This document shows, one piece after another, positions 1,795-52,300 of a stretch of 64,000 bases of DNA. Positions within the stretch are counted from its first letter, which is position 1. Each line of letters starts with the position of its first letter. Made by a program: the position numbers and the translations under genes. The notes beneath the pieces were generated by a model, which saw only the letters and a program-made list of their open reading frames with translations, was not told where the DNA came from and did no database searches. Location of the stretch: sequence record NC_047880.1. The stretch is one strand, 5' to 3'.

Positions 1795-4287
1795 ATGGCC
1801 AAAGAGAAGAAAGTAAAAGAACCCAAAGCTAAGAAAGCAAAAGCTGTTGCTTCTGATGATGTGGGTGGAAAAGAGATTAAGGTGTTTAGTCTCTCAAGCA
1901 TGATGGACGACACGCTCGATCTCATTGAGAAGAAAACGAAAGTAAGTTCTCAGGATGCAGCGCGTCACGCACCACGTATCTCAACTGGTGTGCTCGCTCT
2001 CGATATGTATCTCGATGGCGGTATTGTACCTGGTGGCTGGTATACATTTGCAGGCGGTGAGCAGTCCTGTAAGTCTACGATGACCATGAGTATCATGGCG
2101 TCTCTGATTCGTCTGAAATATAAAGGGACCAGCGTAGTATTCGACTACGAAGGTTCAACCGATGCTGACTACGTTGCTGGTCAGTTGAAAACGTTTGGCG
2201 TTACTGTCGATCCGAAAACAATCTTCGGTGTGCGCGATACTGATGGTGGTGGCTGGATCATCAAACCTCAGATTCGCTACTACGCACCTGATAACGGTGA
2301 GCGCTTCTTCGATTACATGTCGATGCTGCGTCGTCGTCTGCCGAACAAAATCGTTGAGAAAGACGGCTCTGCGTATTACGTCTTTGAGAACACCAAAGAG
2401 AACGCGAAGAAAGTCGCTGGCTTCTACGATAAGAAGTGGTTCAGTCGTAACAACGAATTCAAAGTACCTGCCGAAGATGCACACATGCAGGCTATGGTTA
2501 TCGTTGACTCCTATCCGGCAATGATGCCTGATGCTGTCGATGATGACGATGGTTCAAAAGCAATGGCAATGCAGGCGCGTATGTTCTCTGACGGTATCAA
2601 ACGTTTCCGTGGCGGTATGCGTCGTAAGATGATGACTATCGTTGGCGTTAACCAGATTCGTCTGAAACCTGCTGTAATGTTCGGCCCGCCTGAGTACGAG
2701 CCGTGTGGTGAAGCGTTGAAGTTCTATTGCTTCGCGTCTGACACTAACATCCGTACTGATCACGGTGTGCTGACTGCACCTCAGATCAAAGAGCTGCTGG
2801 ATGCAGGTAAAGACGTTAGCGTTGAATCGTTCGACGGCTTCCAACAGATCGTTCAGGCGTGGAAAGTCGATGACGCTCCATTCCCTATCGAGCTGTACGC
2901 TGGTGGTCACGCATATGTTGGCAGTGCAGAGCACCGTCAGTTCACGCTGATGCACGACACAACCGATGATGGTATGCGTGTGTTACGTCCTGAATGGAAC
3001 ACACTCAATCAGCTTGCGCAATTCCCAAGCGCCGAAGGCCAGTACGCCGCGTTGCGTGTCGCTAAAGTTGAAGAACTGAAACAGCATACGCCTGACGTGT
3101 ATGATGAATCTTCCGCTGCTGTTAAACGCCTACTCGCTAACTGCGATCCACAAAGCAAGCAACTGCCTCTCGTATCTAAAGGTGATACGACGTATGCAGC
3201 GAACTGCCTCGTGATTGATATGGTTGGTGATAGCACTGACCAGTCAGACTTCGAGCTGTGGGTTAAGCACTTCATGAACATCGGTATCTTGGCGTTTGCT
3301 GATGCTAACGGTATCTGGTTGCCGGGTCTGCATAAGCATGAGCTGGAAGAAGCCTTAGTTCAAGATGCTCTCGGTGCACACGCAGGTATCAGTGATGCTT
3401 CGTCCGCTCGTCAACGTCAGACTCAGATGCTGACTGTGATCGCTGACGTATTCCCTGAACTGACTCGTTACGTCCTCGACTACAACCTGACTAACGAGCC
3501 TATCTATCTGGCTCCTGGTTATGATTTCGCGGAAGCGCTTGACGCAATTCTGCATAAAGAAATCAGCGGTTACGACGACCAGTACGATCTGCTGATGACT
3601 CAGCTTGCGTATATCGAAGACTGGTACACGGTCTGTGACTCAATCGTTCCTGTTCCGTTCTCTCTTCGCGCTCTCGACCGTGATGTTGAGTTCTGGGATG
3701 TTAACGTTGCATCAACCTCAGTCGTTATCACGAACAACTTCGCATCGCATAACAGTGACGTGCGCGTTCGTCTGACTTCTCGCGCTGTGCCTCAGGGCTG
3801 GCCTGTGATGAAAGACGCTCACGGTATCGTCGGCGAGAAGTCTGTTACTGTTGAAGGTGGTACTGACCGCTATCGTTTCATTGCGGCTAAGACTACCAAG
3901 AACAAGATGGGTGGCATCCCGAATCAGCAAACGTGGATGCGTTTGTGGGAAGCAGATGGTAATGGTGAAGCTCGTGGCTTCGACCCAGTGTTTGACTGCT
4001 GGCATTATCTGAAAACCCTGGGCTTGATCAACGGTACGCGCAAGAACTTCAAAATGAAAGCGCCGTGTCCTCTCGCATCTGATGTTAAGATCGATTGGGA
4101 CGAGTTCCGTACTTTGATCAACGGTAACAAGCAACAAATCATTGACGTGTGTCGTAAGCTGAAAGTGAAGAAGCCTCTGTCTTTACGTGCGTGGTGCTTC
4201 AAGTTCGTGCAGTCCACACAGGGCAAAGAGATGTTGAAAGCGTCTATCAGTAAGTCGGCTAAAGTCGAAGACGACGAAGACGATTAA
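1795..4287 (+). CDS. recA: RecA/UvsX recombinase, intein-containing
   Basis: RecA motifs: ISTGVLALD, P-loop GGEQSCKST, VIVDS, QARMFS, NQIR, GEALKFY/SDVR, KNK. Confidence 0.9.
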   Translation: MAKEKKVKEPKAKKAKAVASDDVGGKEIKVFSLSSMMDDTLDLIEKKTKVSSQDAARHAPRISTGVLALDMYLDGGIVPGGWYTFAGGEQSCKSTMTMSIMASLIRLKYKGTSVVFDYEGSTDADYVAGQLKTFGVTVDPKTIFGVRDTDGGGWIIKPQIRYYAPDNGERFFDYMSMLRRRLPNKIVEKDGSAYYVFENTKENAKKVAGFYDKKWFSRNNEFKVPAEDAHMQAMVIVDSYPAMMPDAVDDDDGSKAMAMQARMFSDGIKRFRGGMRRKMMTIVGVNQIRLKPAVMFGPPEYEPCGEALKFYCFASDTNIRTDHGVLTAPQIKELLDAGKDVSVESFDGFQQIVQAWKVDDAPFPIELYAGGHAYVGSAEHRQFTLMHDTTDDGMRVLRPEWNTLNQLAQFPSAEGQYAALRVAKVEELKQHTPDVYDESSAAVKRLLANCDPQSKQLPLVSKGDTTYAANCLVIDMVGDSTDQSDFELWVKHFMNIGILAFADANGIWLPGLHKHELEEALVQDALGAHAGISDASSARQRQTQMLTVIADVFPELTRYVLDYNLTNEPIYLAPGYDFAEALDAILHKEISGYDDQYDLLMTQLAYIEDWYTVCDSIVPVPFSLRALDRDVEFWDVNVASTSVVITNNFASHNSDVRVRLTSRAVPQGWPVMKDAHGIVGEKSVTVEGGTDRYRFIAAKTTKNKMGGIPNQQTWMRLWEADGNGEARGFDPVFDCWHYLKTLGLINGTRKNFKMKAPCPLASDVKIDWDEFRTLINGNKQQIIDVCRKLKVKKPLSLRAWCFKFVQSTQGKEMLKASISKSAKVEDDEDD
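2728..3753 (+). mobile_element. intein (342 aa) in RecA/UvsX
   Basis: Starts CFASDT (block A), has block B-like YVGSAEHRQF, ends VITNNFASHN followed by Ser+1; removing it restores ALKFY-SDVR. Confidence 0.92.
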
Positions 4288-5620: not shown

Positions 5621-6640
5621 ATGTCTAAAGAAACTTACTTAGAAGTACATGATGCCTATATTGCAAACAATTTCTTGCAGGATATTCCACGTTCTAAACT
5701 GACAGCTCGCTTCACTGAATATTTGAATCGTGTCAAAGGCGTTGTTCCTTCCAACGGTATTCCTATGGCTGAATTCTTGCAGTGGGCAAACATGATGCCA
5801 GCTAAGGACGAGGAGATCGATTCCCGTAGAATGCTGTTTACGGTTGGCATTGTCTACACGCATTTCATCTGGTCGTTCACTAAAGCCTCCTATGTTGTTG
5901 AGCGTGATATATGGAAGCATCTTGTCGAGAGCGACTCTCCAAAAATACTACCGTCTGCTACACTCAAGCAACTCCCTCACTGGTCTCAGTGGATTGCAGC
6001 ACCAGTTACTGTCACACACAAAGACAGCAAGTCCGATACATCTTACATAATTGATTCGGATGGTTTCTGGGCGACCTATGCAAATTTCAACGAAACAACC
6101 CACATGAACCTGGCCTTTGTTGGGTCTATCAGCATTAATAACGCCCGTCATATAATGCACATGCAACTTATCTTTGACATTACCAAAGATATGGAATTGA
6201 TTGATGGTTTCGATTGGTTCATGTTTATATTGGGTGAAAACGGAAGTTCACATATAGACCCGAGTACACCAGAAGGTCCTGTCGTAGCTCGTATTCTTCA
6301 AGAATTTATGAAGCCTGTCGTCAACGTGCTTTTGTTCATTGCCTCAGAAGTAGACAACATCTACAAGGGAGGTATGAAAAGATTTAAACCCCGCAAACAG
6401 GGTAACTCATACAAAGTTATACCAGTGCGCGATGTAAGAGAGTGGAAAGTAGGTACAGAGTTACTTAATGAAATTCGTACATACGAAAACGAAGTAGAGA
6501 CTGCGAAATCTCAAGGCCGTCGTGCTCATATACGACGCGGCCATTATCATAACTACTGGTACGGTCCGCGTACTGGTGATCGTCAGCTCAAATCAAGATG
6601 GGTTCCACCTTGTGTTGTTAGAGGCACCATCGAAGATTGA
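5621..6640 (+). CDS. hypothetical protein with C-terminal RxHxRRGHxH motif
   Basis: ATG at 5621 preferred, since the ORF-track start overlaps the terminator; C-terminus RRAHIRRGHYHNYWYGPR..RWVPP. Confidence 0.8.
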   Translation: MSKETYLEVHDAYIANNFLQDIPRSKLTARFTEYLNRVKGVVPSNGIPMAEFLQWANMMPAKDEEIDSRRMLFTVGIVYTHFIWSFTKASYVVERDIWKHLVESDSPKILPSATLKQLPHWSQWIAAPVTVTHKDSKSDTSYIIDSDGFWATYANFNETTHMNLAFVGSISINNARHIMHMQLIFDITKDMELIDGFDWFMFILGENGSSHIDPSTPEGPVVARILQEFMKPVVNVLLFIASEVDNIYKGGMKRFKPRKQGNSYKVIPVRDVREWKVGTELLNEIRTYENEVETAKSQGRRAHIRRGHYHNYWYGPRTGDRQLKSRWVPPCVVRGTIED

Positions 6641-7785: not shown

Positions 7786-7827
7786 AAAGGGCTGTCAGAA
7801 ATCAATCTGATGGCCCTTTCTCTTTTA
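7786..7827 (+). terminator. intrinsic terminator
   Basis: AAAGGGCTGTCAGA...TCTGATGGCCCTTT followed by a T-rich tract. Confidence 0.75.
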
Positions 7828-7890: not shown

Positions 7891-8823
7891 ATGTCTTTGA
7901 TTAAACTCGAAGGCGTTGCATCTACTTCTGCTGTATCAAAAGCACAGAAAGATGCGGCTGTCTACATGTTCGGTTCTAAAGGTCACAGCATTGTTGCAGT
8001 GCTTGACAAGTTCGCTCGCGCAAAAGAAATTCAGGCGCCGCACCTTGCTGGTATTCTCGCGCTGATGAAAGATGGTGAAGATGACGAAATCATCAAATTC
8101 ACATCGTCCGCTGCTGGGAAGAAGTCTATCGTTGCTGCGAAGCAATTCGCTATTGCAAAAACGTTTACGAACGCAATCAAATACCTGAAACTGATTCGCG
8201 TTCCGATGAAGTGGATTCCAGGCCACTCTGATACTGCGGCTGCACGTATTCAACAAACCGAAACTATTCGTGCAAGCAAACGCGCTTCTACAAAACCTGA
8301 GAAGCCTATCAAGCTTGATAACCCTCATGCACCTGAAGCCGTAGAGCAAGAACAAACCAAAGCGTCTGCCGCTATCAACAAGATTTGGGACCTGTCTAAG
8401 TTCAAATCAAATCTTCTTGATTCGTCTTGGTCTGCGTTGATCACTGCATTCAACACAGAGTTCAAAGGTCGCTATGTGTTGAAACTGAACAAGCGTGAAG
8501 GTGCATTCCGCATCAACACTCTCAATGGCGGTTACTCTGGTCGTGGTGAAGCATTCCTGTCTGCTGCTTTCGAAAACAATTCGTGGGTAATGTTTGCCAA
8601 CGACCCTGCGACTAAGAGTGCTGCATTCGATAGTTGGTACGTCGGTCCTAAACTGACATTCGCAACAATCGTTTCGTATCTGAGCAACGAACTTGCTGGT
8701 CCTCATTCCGGTGAGAAGCAAGAGATCGATAAGCTGATCGCTGGCGCTGTTATCTTCCCGCACAATGATCGCTATTACGATGCGACAGAAGACCAGCCGA
8801 AAAAGACTACTGCAAAAAAGTAG
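7891..8823 (+). CDS. hypothetical protein (0-frame product; may be extended by a -1 frameshift)
   Basis: AAGGA SD, ATG at 7891; ends GCA AAA AAG TAG. Confidence 0.8.
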   Translation: MSLIKLEGVASTSAVSKAQKDAAVYMFGSKGHSIVAVLDKFARAKEIQAPHLAGILALMKDGEDDEIIKFTSSAAGKKSIVAAKQFAIAKTFTNAIKYLKLIRVPMKWIPGHSDTAAARIQQTETIRASKRASTKPEKPIKLDNPHAPEAVEQEQTKASAAINKIWDLSKFKSNLLDSSWSALITAFNTEFKGRYVLKLNKREGAFRINTLNGGYSGRGEAFLSAAFENNSWVMFANDPATKSAAFDSWYVGPKLTFATIVSYLSNELAGPHSGEKQEIDKLIAGAVIFPHNDRYYDATEDQPKKTTAKK

Positions 8824-9524
8824 TTACCAGTGCACCTGCTGCATACACTCCTTCTGGGAAAAGCGCAGATACACTGGTAGACGAAATCGCAGAAACTCCT
8901 GCCAAGAAAATTGCAGCGAAAGGTCTTCGCGAGAAAGAAGAATACTTTGCTGCACTAGCTACGGTGCTAGGTCGTAACTTGCCTGCATATCGCGTAGAAG
9001 CAACGCACGAAGGTGTGACTGTTACACGTGGCTCGAAGGTCAACACTGTGCGTCTTGGCGAAAAAGCTTGGACCATTCAGATGGGCATCACTGCTAAATT
9101 GAAATCACTCGGCTCCAAGTTTGATATCGTTGATCTGCTTGGTATGATTGACAAAGGTATCGCCAGCCCAAAGCTTAAAGCCGGAGTTCCCGGCCAAGCA
9201 ATGCCGATGCCTTACTTTGATGCCGTGAAGAAGAACGCGCAAGACGGAACGTATGATACCGTTATCTACATGGAAGCTGATCGAATTTATCCTCTGGCGC
9301 TCAAGCGTGAAGGGAATATGTTCACAATGAAAGTTTCTATGTTCGGCCCTATTCAGCATTTCATCACTCAAGGTATTCAGGAGTGTGGTGCAACGCTGAC
9401 TGGTGTGACGGGTAGATCATTCACGTTCAATGAAGACGATGCCAACGCATTTGAGAAGTGGCTTAAAGCTCAACGTAGACCGAAGACGCTTTCGACCAAA
9501 TATCTGATGCCACAGGCTTTGTAG
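8820..9524 (+). CDS. -1 frame extension of the 7891 ORF (the ORF track reports only 8964-9524)
   Basis: Frame is open from 8820 (VVTSAPAAYTPSGKSADTLVDEIAETPAKK...); no SD before GTG 8964. Confidence 0.65.
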   Translation, partial: VVTSAPAAYTPSGKSADTLVDEIAETPAKKIAAKGLREKEEYFAALATVLGRNLPAYRVEATHEGVTVTRGSKVNTVRLGEKAWTIQMGITAKLKSLGSKFDIVDLLGMIDKGIASPKLKAGVPGQAMPMPYFDAVKKNAQDGTYDTVIYMEADRIYPLALKREGNMFTMKVSMFGPIQHFITQGIQECGATLTGVTGRSFTFNEDDANAFEKWLKAQRRPKTLSTKYLMPQAL

Positions 9525-9541: not shown

Positions 9542-9570
9542 AAAAAGGGGTGCCTTCGGGTGCCCCTTTT
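9542..9570 (+). terminator. intrinsic terminator (possibly bidirectional)
   Basis: AAAAAGGGGTGCC-TTCG-GGTGCCCCTTTT. Confidence 0.9.
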
Positions 9571-51739: not shown

Positions 51740-52300
51740 ATGGCAAAAGCTACTAAAGGTACTAATCTGGTTCCGACCATTGTTTCCCGTATCGCAAAGA
51801 AAGCTGGTTCTATCGGAACTACCAAAGTTAAGCCAACTGATCTGCCGCACGACATTCTGATTGAAAGCGTTCACGCTTCTGAAATCGTCGGTTTCATCAC
51901 AGACCGTTCTGCTACCAGCGTAACGATTCGTCACAAACGTGGCCACGGTTCTTCTGCTCAAATCGTTTCTACTTTCGGTCCTGGTCAACTGCTGACTGTT
52001 CTGGGTGAAGCCGGTTCTCACGGTCAAGTCCGTGCAATCGTGACTGCGCCAGTGTGTGAGCTGAAAGGTTACACTGTTAAATTCGACGGCGCAATCATCA
52101 TCGCCACCTCAATCGAAACTGGCGAAGTGATTAACGTTAACACCAACCTGCCGGGCTACACTGTTCGCGCTACTGTTAACGAAAACGCTGCTGCTAAAAA
52201 GTACGGCACTGCTGCGCCAGTTAAAAACAAAAAAGTTGAAAAGTCTGACAAAGCCGGTAAATCTGCGAAAGCGATTAAAGGCGGCAAAGTAAAAAAGTAA
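51740..52300 (+). CDS. beta-rich protein with Lys-rich tail
   Basis: GGAG SD, downstream of tandem CTGTAAA motifs; ends KNKKVEKSDKAGKSAKAIKGGKVKK. Confidence 0.85.
   Translation: MAKATKGTNLVPTIVSRIAKKAGSIGTTKVKPTDLPHDILIESVHASEIVGFITDRSATSVTIRHKRGHGSSAQIVSTFGPGQLLTVLGEAGSHGQVRAIVTAPVCELKGYTVKFDGAIIIATSIETGEVINVNTNLPGYTVRATVNENAAAKKYGTAAPVKNKKVEKSDKAGKSAKAIKGGKVKK

Follow-up and report, generated by a model that had tools for sequence, protein, structure and literature searches.

Erwinia phage vB_EamM_Y3 (KY984068, 261 kb, genus Sasquatchvirus) carries what is, with good confidence, a single gene that ribosomes read in two frames through programmed −1 frameshifting. The gene occupies positions 7891 to 9524 of the stretch of record NC_047880.1 analyzed here (the window, 64,000 nucleotides [nt] long, to which all positions refer unless another sequence is named), which was found by megablast to be 100% identical to Y3. 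In GenBank, this region encodes two hypothetical proteins, Y3_249 (7891–8823) and Y3_250 (8964–9524), and Erwinia phage pEp_SNUABM_52 is annotated alike. The upstream open reading frame (ORF), which comprises 310 codons and a stop codon, ends in GCA AAA AAG TAG, so that its last two sense codons and the base preceding them constitute the heptamer A_AAA_AAG in the X_XXY_YYZ phase, with the stop codon adjacent and no spacer in between. The downstream ORF lies in the −1 frame relative to the upstream ORF. The last stop codon of the −1 frame on the upstream side is at 8763–8765, from which the frame is open through 9524, that is, for 234 codons from the heptamer. The first ATG, GTG or TTG of the −1 frame past that stop codon is GTG 8964, and no AGGAG-like (Shine-Dalgarno, SD) sequence was found before it. 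An earlier examination of the letters without database searches (the sequence-only reading) had pointed out the in-phase heptamer with its adjacent stop codon and the −1 frame running open into an ORF whose GTG has no SD, and had predicted products of 310 and about 544 amino acids (aa); we obtained the same two lengths for the predicted products. ATG 7891, which is preceded by an SD-like TAAGGAT, was taken as the start rather than GTG 7858 of the ORF list because the homologues begin at the same MSLIK.

In tblastn searches with each frame piece on its own, both pieces matched Alexandravirus-like jumbo phages (~20 distinct phages of Erwinia and Dickeya). In all of these genomes, the matches on the N side and on the C side shared one frame, and they differed by one only in Y3 and SNUABM_52. 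The annotated single-ORF orthologues (270, 512, 546, 562, 690 and 699 aa) follow a common grammar, in which a helical N domain of ~150 residues is followed by variable middle modules, by a conserved module B of ~115–118 residues and sometimes by a module C; module B forms the end or near-end of almost every family member. In the domain map, the Y3 upstream ORF corresponds to N-A and the −1 frame piece to B-C, and one-ORF examples are contig L019 (N-A-B) and SNUABM_35 (N-A-x-B-C). Module A of Y3 was 33–60% identical to module A of SNUABM_16, SNUABM_35, L019 and L021, and module C follows B within one ORF in SNUABM_35, P0009, P0012 and others. The −1 frame before GTG 8964 showed ~60% protein identity to the interior of single-ORF relatives. 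The linkers that precede module B in the relatives are rich in Lys, Ala and Pro, a setting in which slippery runs arise easily.

The region of pEp_SNUABM_52, from Korea, was 99.7% identical to that of Y3 by megablast, and protein searches together with exact look-ups yielded nine further two-ORF assemblies, namely L018 (a JGI contig), L028 (an ENA contig) and L020 together with L022–L027 (seven Logan contigs, which come from several run sets). Two JGI metagenome scans for more relatives gave nothing new. The sequence-only reading had asked whether homologues keep the heptamer and the stop codon or have a single ORF; both situations occur, the former without any change in 11 of 11 Y3-like sequences (the nine assemblies and the two isolates), the latter in the ~20 relatives. 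Homopolymers are error-prone, and a sequencing or assembly error in a gene that is truly one ORF had been named as an alternative. Since the same letters stand in independent assemblies from Switzerland, Korea and several metagenomic runs, 11 in all from different laboratories, countries and run sets, such an error is for practical purposes excluded. Five of the contigs (L020, L022–L024 and L028) differed from Y3 throughout the DNA upstream of the last few codons of the upstream ORF, which in L020, L023 and L024 is complete and encodes 451–453 aa with a different middle module. Between the 310-aa and the 451–453-aa versions, the N domain was 100% identical and the downstream DNA nearly identical. 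That the boundary of similarity falls a few codons before the heptamer indicates that recombination beside the recoding site has exchanged one module for another.

The 140 nt between the two annotated ORFs (8824–8963) contain no ATG, GTG or TTG in the −1 frame. Ten of the 11 Y3-like sequences reach downstream of the stop codon, where they represent six distinct haplotypes, and 13 sites vary among them within the 140 nt: 11 at third, 2 at first and none at second codon positions of the −1 frame. Eleven of the 13 variable sites are synonymous in this frame, in which 25% of the possible changes are synonymous (P ~1e-5), whereas 12 or 13 of the changes would alter the protein if either of the other two frames were read. 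In the remainder of the downstream frame, 26 synonymous sites compare with 17 others. The synonymous pattern within the 140 nt indicates that the −1 frame is already being read a dozen or so bases from the stop codon, where it has no start codon. A pseudogene is thereby ruled out, and so is a downstream product that arises solely by initiation at 8964. Relaxed selection downstream of the frame change, as expected of a pseudogene or a decaying split gene, was not seen, and pseudogenization in its plain form, another alternative listed in the sequence-only reading, is at odds with the purifying selection found there. By contrast, the statement that the −1 frame reads as natural protein was borne out both by the identity to relatives and by the synonymous-site pattern.

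These results also bear on the arrangement given by GenBank and by gene callers, that is, two separate genes with the downstream start at GTG 8964 or at a nearby codon. A 186-codon ORF does exist at this position, but GTG 8964, besides having no SD, falls near residue 48 of the 118 that make up module B, so that the annotated start cuts in two a domain which ~40 family proteins contain whole. In addition, the preceding 140 nt are under purifying selection in a frame that offers no start codon, and module B is never a separate gene in the unshifted relatives. We consider two separate genes very improbable, and the annotated start of the downstream ORF is probably an annotation artefact. A terminator scan revealed no plus-strand terminator-like site between the two ORFs.

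The conjunction of an in-frame heptamer with a long open −1 frame was also unique within the window. AAAAAAG as such was not enriched (13 occurrences, with 16.8 expected), and the 93 plus-strand ORFs contain 28 in-frame X_XXY_YYZ heptamers. Only one of the 28, the A_AAA_AAG at 8814–8820, is followed by a −1 frame that is open for at least 60 codons; the 234 open codons found here compare with 24 at most at the other XXXAAAG sites of the window.

Directly after the stop codon, a stem-loop of 57 nt is predicted. The 65 nt past the heptamer folded in Y3 with a minimum free energy (MFE) of −20.8 kcal/mol (z −2.68; 4 of 200 shuffles folded as well), which is in the lowest 2.5% of all 65-nt segments of the window. 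The same fold was obtained in six of six haplotypes with no pair broken (MFE −20.8 to −23.5 kcal/mol, z −2.7 to −4.0), whereas the homologous 65 nt of eight unshifted relatives gave −12 to −17 kcal/mol and z values of −0.8 to +1.1. Four of the 19 third-codon positions in the stem-loop vary, and all four are unpaired (P = 0.009). The sequence-only reading had proposed a weak hairpin with 5 bp and a 5-nt loop; substitutions break it in several haplotypes, and the larger stem-loop at 8824–8880 is predicted instead.

A second lineage has the same layout with a heptamer and a hairpin of its own. In L021 (Logan DRR494324), the N domain of which is 74% identical to that of Y3, the upstream ORF encodes 305 aa (N-A) and contains an in-frame C_CCA_AAG one codon before its stop codon, and 243 open codons in the −1 frame lead into the next called gene. 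The frame change occurs at the same domain boundary as in Y3, and the −1 piece, from just past the stop codon, was 54–58% identical over 240 residues to residues 311–542 of four single-ORF relatives. The hairpin directly past the L021 heptamer (−18.2 kcal/mol in 45 nt, z −2.9) is in the lowest 0.5% of the locus, compared with −4 to −8 kcal/mol and z values near 0 at the homologous sites of four unshifted relatives.

The long protein might also be made by transcriptional slippage, in which RNA polymerase would alter the length of the A run in some transcripts and standard translation would do the rest. Some insertion sequence (IS) elements and phages use slippage at A or T runs (PMC5009743), and the Y3 site itself has six consecutive A. 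It is, however, the ribosomal mechanism that has a 3′ RNA stem-loop as its hallmark. Productive transcriptional slippage in bacteria occurs at runs of about eight or more, by which measure six A are short, and no long base run is present at the C_CCA_AAG site of L021. Transcriptional slippage is accordingly judged extremely improbable, and we infer that the shift is made by ribosomes rather than by RNA polymerase.

In E. coli, the three most efficient heptamers are C_CCA_AAG, G_GGA_AAG and A_AAA_AAG; they owe their efficiency to a lysine tRNA that is unusually shifty on AAG, A_AAG being the best tetramer, and the frameshifting they cause rises from ~0.3% without help to as much as 54% when a strong 3′ structure is present (PMC4066793). 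A stimulator therefore matters, and the Y3 and L021 lineages each have a candidate. The heptamers of both lineages are among these three, and Erwinia is likewise an enterobacterium. No lysine tRNA of the phage was found within the window. We propose that most ribosomes would finish at the upstream TAG, giving the 310-aa product with the helical N domain and module A, whereas a fraction would slip back one base on A_AAA_AAG, where both lysine tRNAs could re-pair on AAA. The slipped ribosomes would then read modules B and C in the −1 frame, giving a protein of ~544 aa with the order N-A-B-C. The stem-loop at 8824–8880 is the likely stimulator. Because the stop codon directly follows the heptamer, slow termination with the stop codon in the A site could give the P-site lysine tRNA a second chance to slip. 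The short form may well be useful by itself, with the phage setting the ratio of short to long product.

The programmed −1 frameshift put forward in the sequence-only reading is supported by the one-ORF relatives, the kept heptamer, the coding selection in the −1 frame and the lineage-specific stem-loop, yet several observations weigh against it. All carriers of A_AAA_AAG are close kin (N domain 99–100% and downstream DNA ~92–100% identical), which limits the depth of conservation and leaves the invariance of the heptamer without statistical power. An indel in a base run of a Lys-rich linker would look the same and would itself create a slippery heptamer. No compensatory base changes (covariation) were found in the stem-loop among the six haplotypes, so that the stem-loop stays a prediction. 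Its first predicted pair lies 3 nt past the heptamer, as against the usual 5–8 nt, although the first two pairs are weak (U-G and U-A) and the stable, G/C-containing part begins at 5–6 nt, within the usual range. Neither version of the upstream ORF contains an upstream SD-like stimulator (GGAG- or AGGA-like), and a comparison with the frameshift elements of Rfam gave only chance-level hits to unrelated families. The L021 lineage consists of a single contig, which stayed a singleton in a search for relatives; an assembly error is therefore possible there, but it would not explain the hairpin. In a further relative, L029 (Logan ERR13298114_3499), the gene at 2501–4073 of the contig has the N domain, module B and module C in three frames, which shows that the family is not free of plain frame damage or assembly error. 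Finally, a literature search found no proteome or ribosome-profiling data for the gene. L029 was considered as a third case of frameshifting and rejected, because neither of its two frame changes is at a canonical heptamer, and it is not counted as support. The genes beside it look intact; L029 represents either a decaying copy or an assembly prone to errors.

The serious rival views the same body of evidence as a frame-changing mutation that became fixed in a run of the Lys-rich linker, with low, unselected slippage rescuing the full-length protein and the 310-aa product being a useless by-product; a ‘compensatory’ class of frameshifts of this kind is described in a review (PMC5009743). This view, too, has ribosomes shifting at this very site; its one point of difference from programmed frameshifting is whether selection acts on the ratio and the short form. 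In its favor, all other members of the family are single ORFs, runs of this kind are common in Lys/Ala-rich linkers such as the one that holds the site, and the best heptamers yield only ~0.3% without a stimulator. Against it stand a stem-loop that is specific to the shifted lineage, occupies the place of a stimulator and has its synonymous sites frozen at paired positions, an arrangement that has persisted through six haplotypes and through replacement of the upstream module, and the second lineage. We regard this rival as unlikely: the lineage-specific structure and the second case favor selection over tolerated slippage.

It is possible, though we advance this only tentatively, that frameshifting arose twice from one-ORF ancestors at the same boundary, that following module A, a top-efficiency heptamer and a new stem-loop being acquired separately on each occasion. 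Were this the case, it would imply selection for a set ratio of short N-A to long N-A-B(-C) and would provide a natural before-and-after series for the birth of a frameshift signal. The unshifted close relatives and the second lineage with its different signal in any event make up a compact comparative system for the evolution of slippery sites and stimulators. For Y3, SNUABM_52 and their metagenomic kin, the annotation would be corrected from two hypothetical proteins and a 140-nt gap to one recoded gene. The features of the locus are collected in Table 1.

Table 1. Features of the Y3 locus, with positions in the 64,000-nt window
Feature	Position	Strand	Basis or remark
Terminator-like hairpin upstream of the gene	7786..7819	+	Terminator scan
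Whole two-frame gene (Y3_249 + Y3_250), read as one recoded gene	7891..9524	+	Both pieces align to single-ORF orthologues
Upstream ORF, short product	7891..8823	+	310 codons + TAG; heptamer and stop codon identical in 11 assemblies
N domain, residues 1–160: helical family-defining domain and disordered linker	7891..8370	+	AlphaFold2 (AF2) model; conserved in the family
Module A (alpha/beta, residues ~165–295) and Lys-rich tail	8371..8820	+	Domain map, AF2 model
Module B, −1 frame	8823..9176	+	50–61% identical to family module B
Start-less stretch annotated as intergenic, 140 nt	8824..8963	+	−1 frame: first ~47 residues of module B
Predicted stem-loop, candidate stimulator	8824..8880	+	9-bp basal helix 8824–8832 / 8872–8880 and inner helices
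Downstream ORF as annotated, 186 aa from GTG	8964..9524	+	GTG without SD, mid-module B
Module C, −1 frame	9177..9521	+	37–40% identical to C-terminal modules of relatives
G+C-rich hairpin followed by TTTT past the gene end, terminator-like	9547..9570	+	By eye; not listed by the terminator scan

Neither frame piece, nor any of four full-length relatives, had a family match in Pfam, PHROGs or NCBIfam, and a sequence search of PDB gave nothing usable. An AF2 model built with a 49-sequence alignment reached a mean predicted local distance difference test (pLDDT) score of 81.7, with values above 90 for residues ~15–110 (a single sequence gave 35), and consists of the helical N domain, a disordered Lys/Pro-rich linker and the alpha/beta module A. 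Foldseek found no match in PDB (best E 0.23); module A resembled frataxin, but not significantly. Against BFVD, it retrieved only uncharacterized proteins, all from this group of phages and some of them paralogues encoded by Y3 itself. The family comprises 46 clusters at 50% identity, in which the N domain is conserved. Among ten neighboring ORFs scanned against Pfam, one had a RecA domain and nine had no match. In agreement with the sequence-only reading, which had recognized neither a tail-chaperone nor a capsid gene here, no family, structure or neighbor points to either.

Distant paralogues of the N domain (~19% identity, Foldseek E 1e-8; A0A2H4IB92 and others), all uncharacterized, are found in Y3, Yoloswag, AD1 and JA13, which makes it a multi-copy domain family of this group of jumbo phages. 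The RecA domain mentioned above (PF00154, E 2.6e-21) covers only residues 234–313 of an 830-aa protein encoded at 1795–4287, the AD1 orthologue of which is annotated as putative RecA. Two genes upstream of the two-frame gene, a 339-aa protein is encoded at 5621–6640; its orthologues in L019, L021, L025 and L029 carry a precomputed PF26125 (AcrVA2-like) assignment, and the Y3 copy had no Pfam match at E ≤0.001.

Three further observations concern heptamers and open −1 frames elsewhere. Within 9159–9185, the downstream frame contains another in-frame heptamer of the XXXAAAG type, exactly at the boundary of modules B and C. A −1 slip at this heptamer would meet a stop codon after one codon, and the product would end approximately where the proteins of SNUABM_16, AD1 and L019 do. 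All six haplotypes retain the heptamer, and its −1 stop codon is kept even where a base changes; since no structure follows it (z ~+0.8), it is probably a chance occurrence in a P-K linker. The ORF at 51740–52300 also has an in-frame A_AAA_AAG directly before its stop codon, with a −1 frame open for 8 codons, so that a slip would add a short tail; this is likely due to chance. In L006 (2860–3394 of that sequence) and L016 (pEa_SNUABM_23 / _3), the stop codon of the 546-aa orthologue is followed by 178 open codons in the −1 frame, which run through the next annotated gene, and there is no classical heptamer. As only 58 codons are open in the related L017, this too is probably chance.

Among known systems, E. 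coli dnaX (tau/gamma) resembles the Y3 gene in its heptamer, which is the same, in the kind of lysine tRNA and in having an enterobacterial host. It has a downstream stem-loop (cited in PMC4066793). In dnaX, however, the shift leads to early termination and a shorter product and is helped by an SD-like element upstream, whereas in Y3 the shift would give the longer product, the zero-frame stop codon is adjacent and no SD-like element was seen. The orfA-orfAB arrangement of IS911 and the IS3 family is likewise similar, with A_AAA_AAG near the end of the upstream ORF and a 3′ RNA stimulator, and the slip fuses overlapping frames into a longer protein while the short one is also made (PMC4066793). 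Unlike in IS911, the Y3 gene is not a transposase or part of a mobile element and is without an SD-like stimulator, and its predicted stem-loop is branched and spans 57 nt.

In lambda G/GT and other tail-assembly chaperones, a C-terminal domain is likewise added by a −1 slip shortly before the upstream ORF ends, the ratio of short to long product in lambda being 30:1 (PMC5009743). The Y3 gene differs from these in its heptamer, in showing no similarity to the chaperone family and in its neighborhood: neither tail tube nor tape-measure genes adjoin it, and apart from a RecA-like gene on the upstream side its neighbors have no family match. In the T7 capsid gene 10A/10B, a −1 slip at the very end of the ORF produces a minor form that is longer at its C terminus. 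The extension, in this case to the major capsid protein, is a short one, whereas that of Y3 spans 234 codons with two predicted folded modules, in a protein that is not recognizably structural. Our literature search found no report of frameshifting in jumbo phages, and the AD1 paper mentions neither frameshifting nor a proteome. The Y3 gene is thus a well-supported candidate for frameshifting, in a jumbo phage, outside the tail-chaperone, capsid and transposase genes in which cases cluster: the mechanism is a known one, and the class of gene is one where it had not been noted before.

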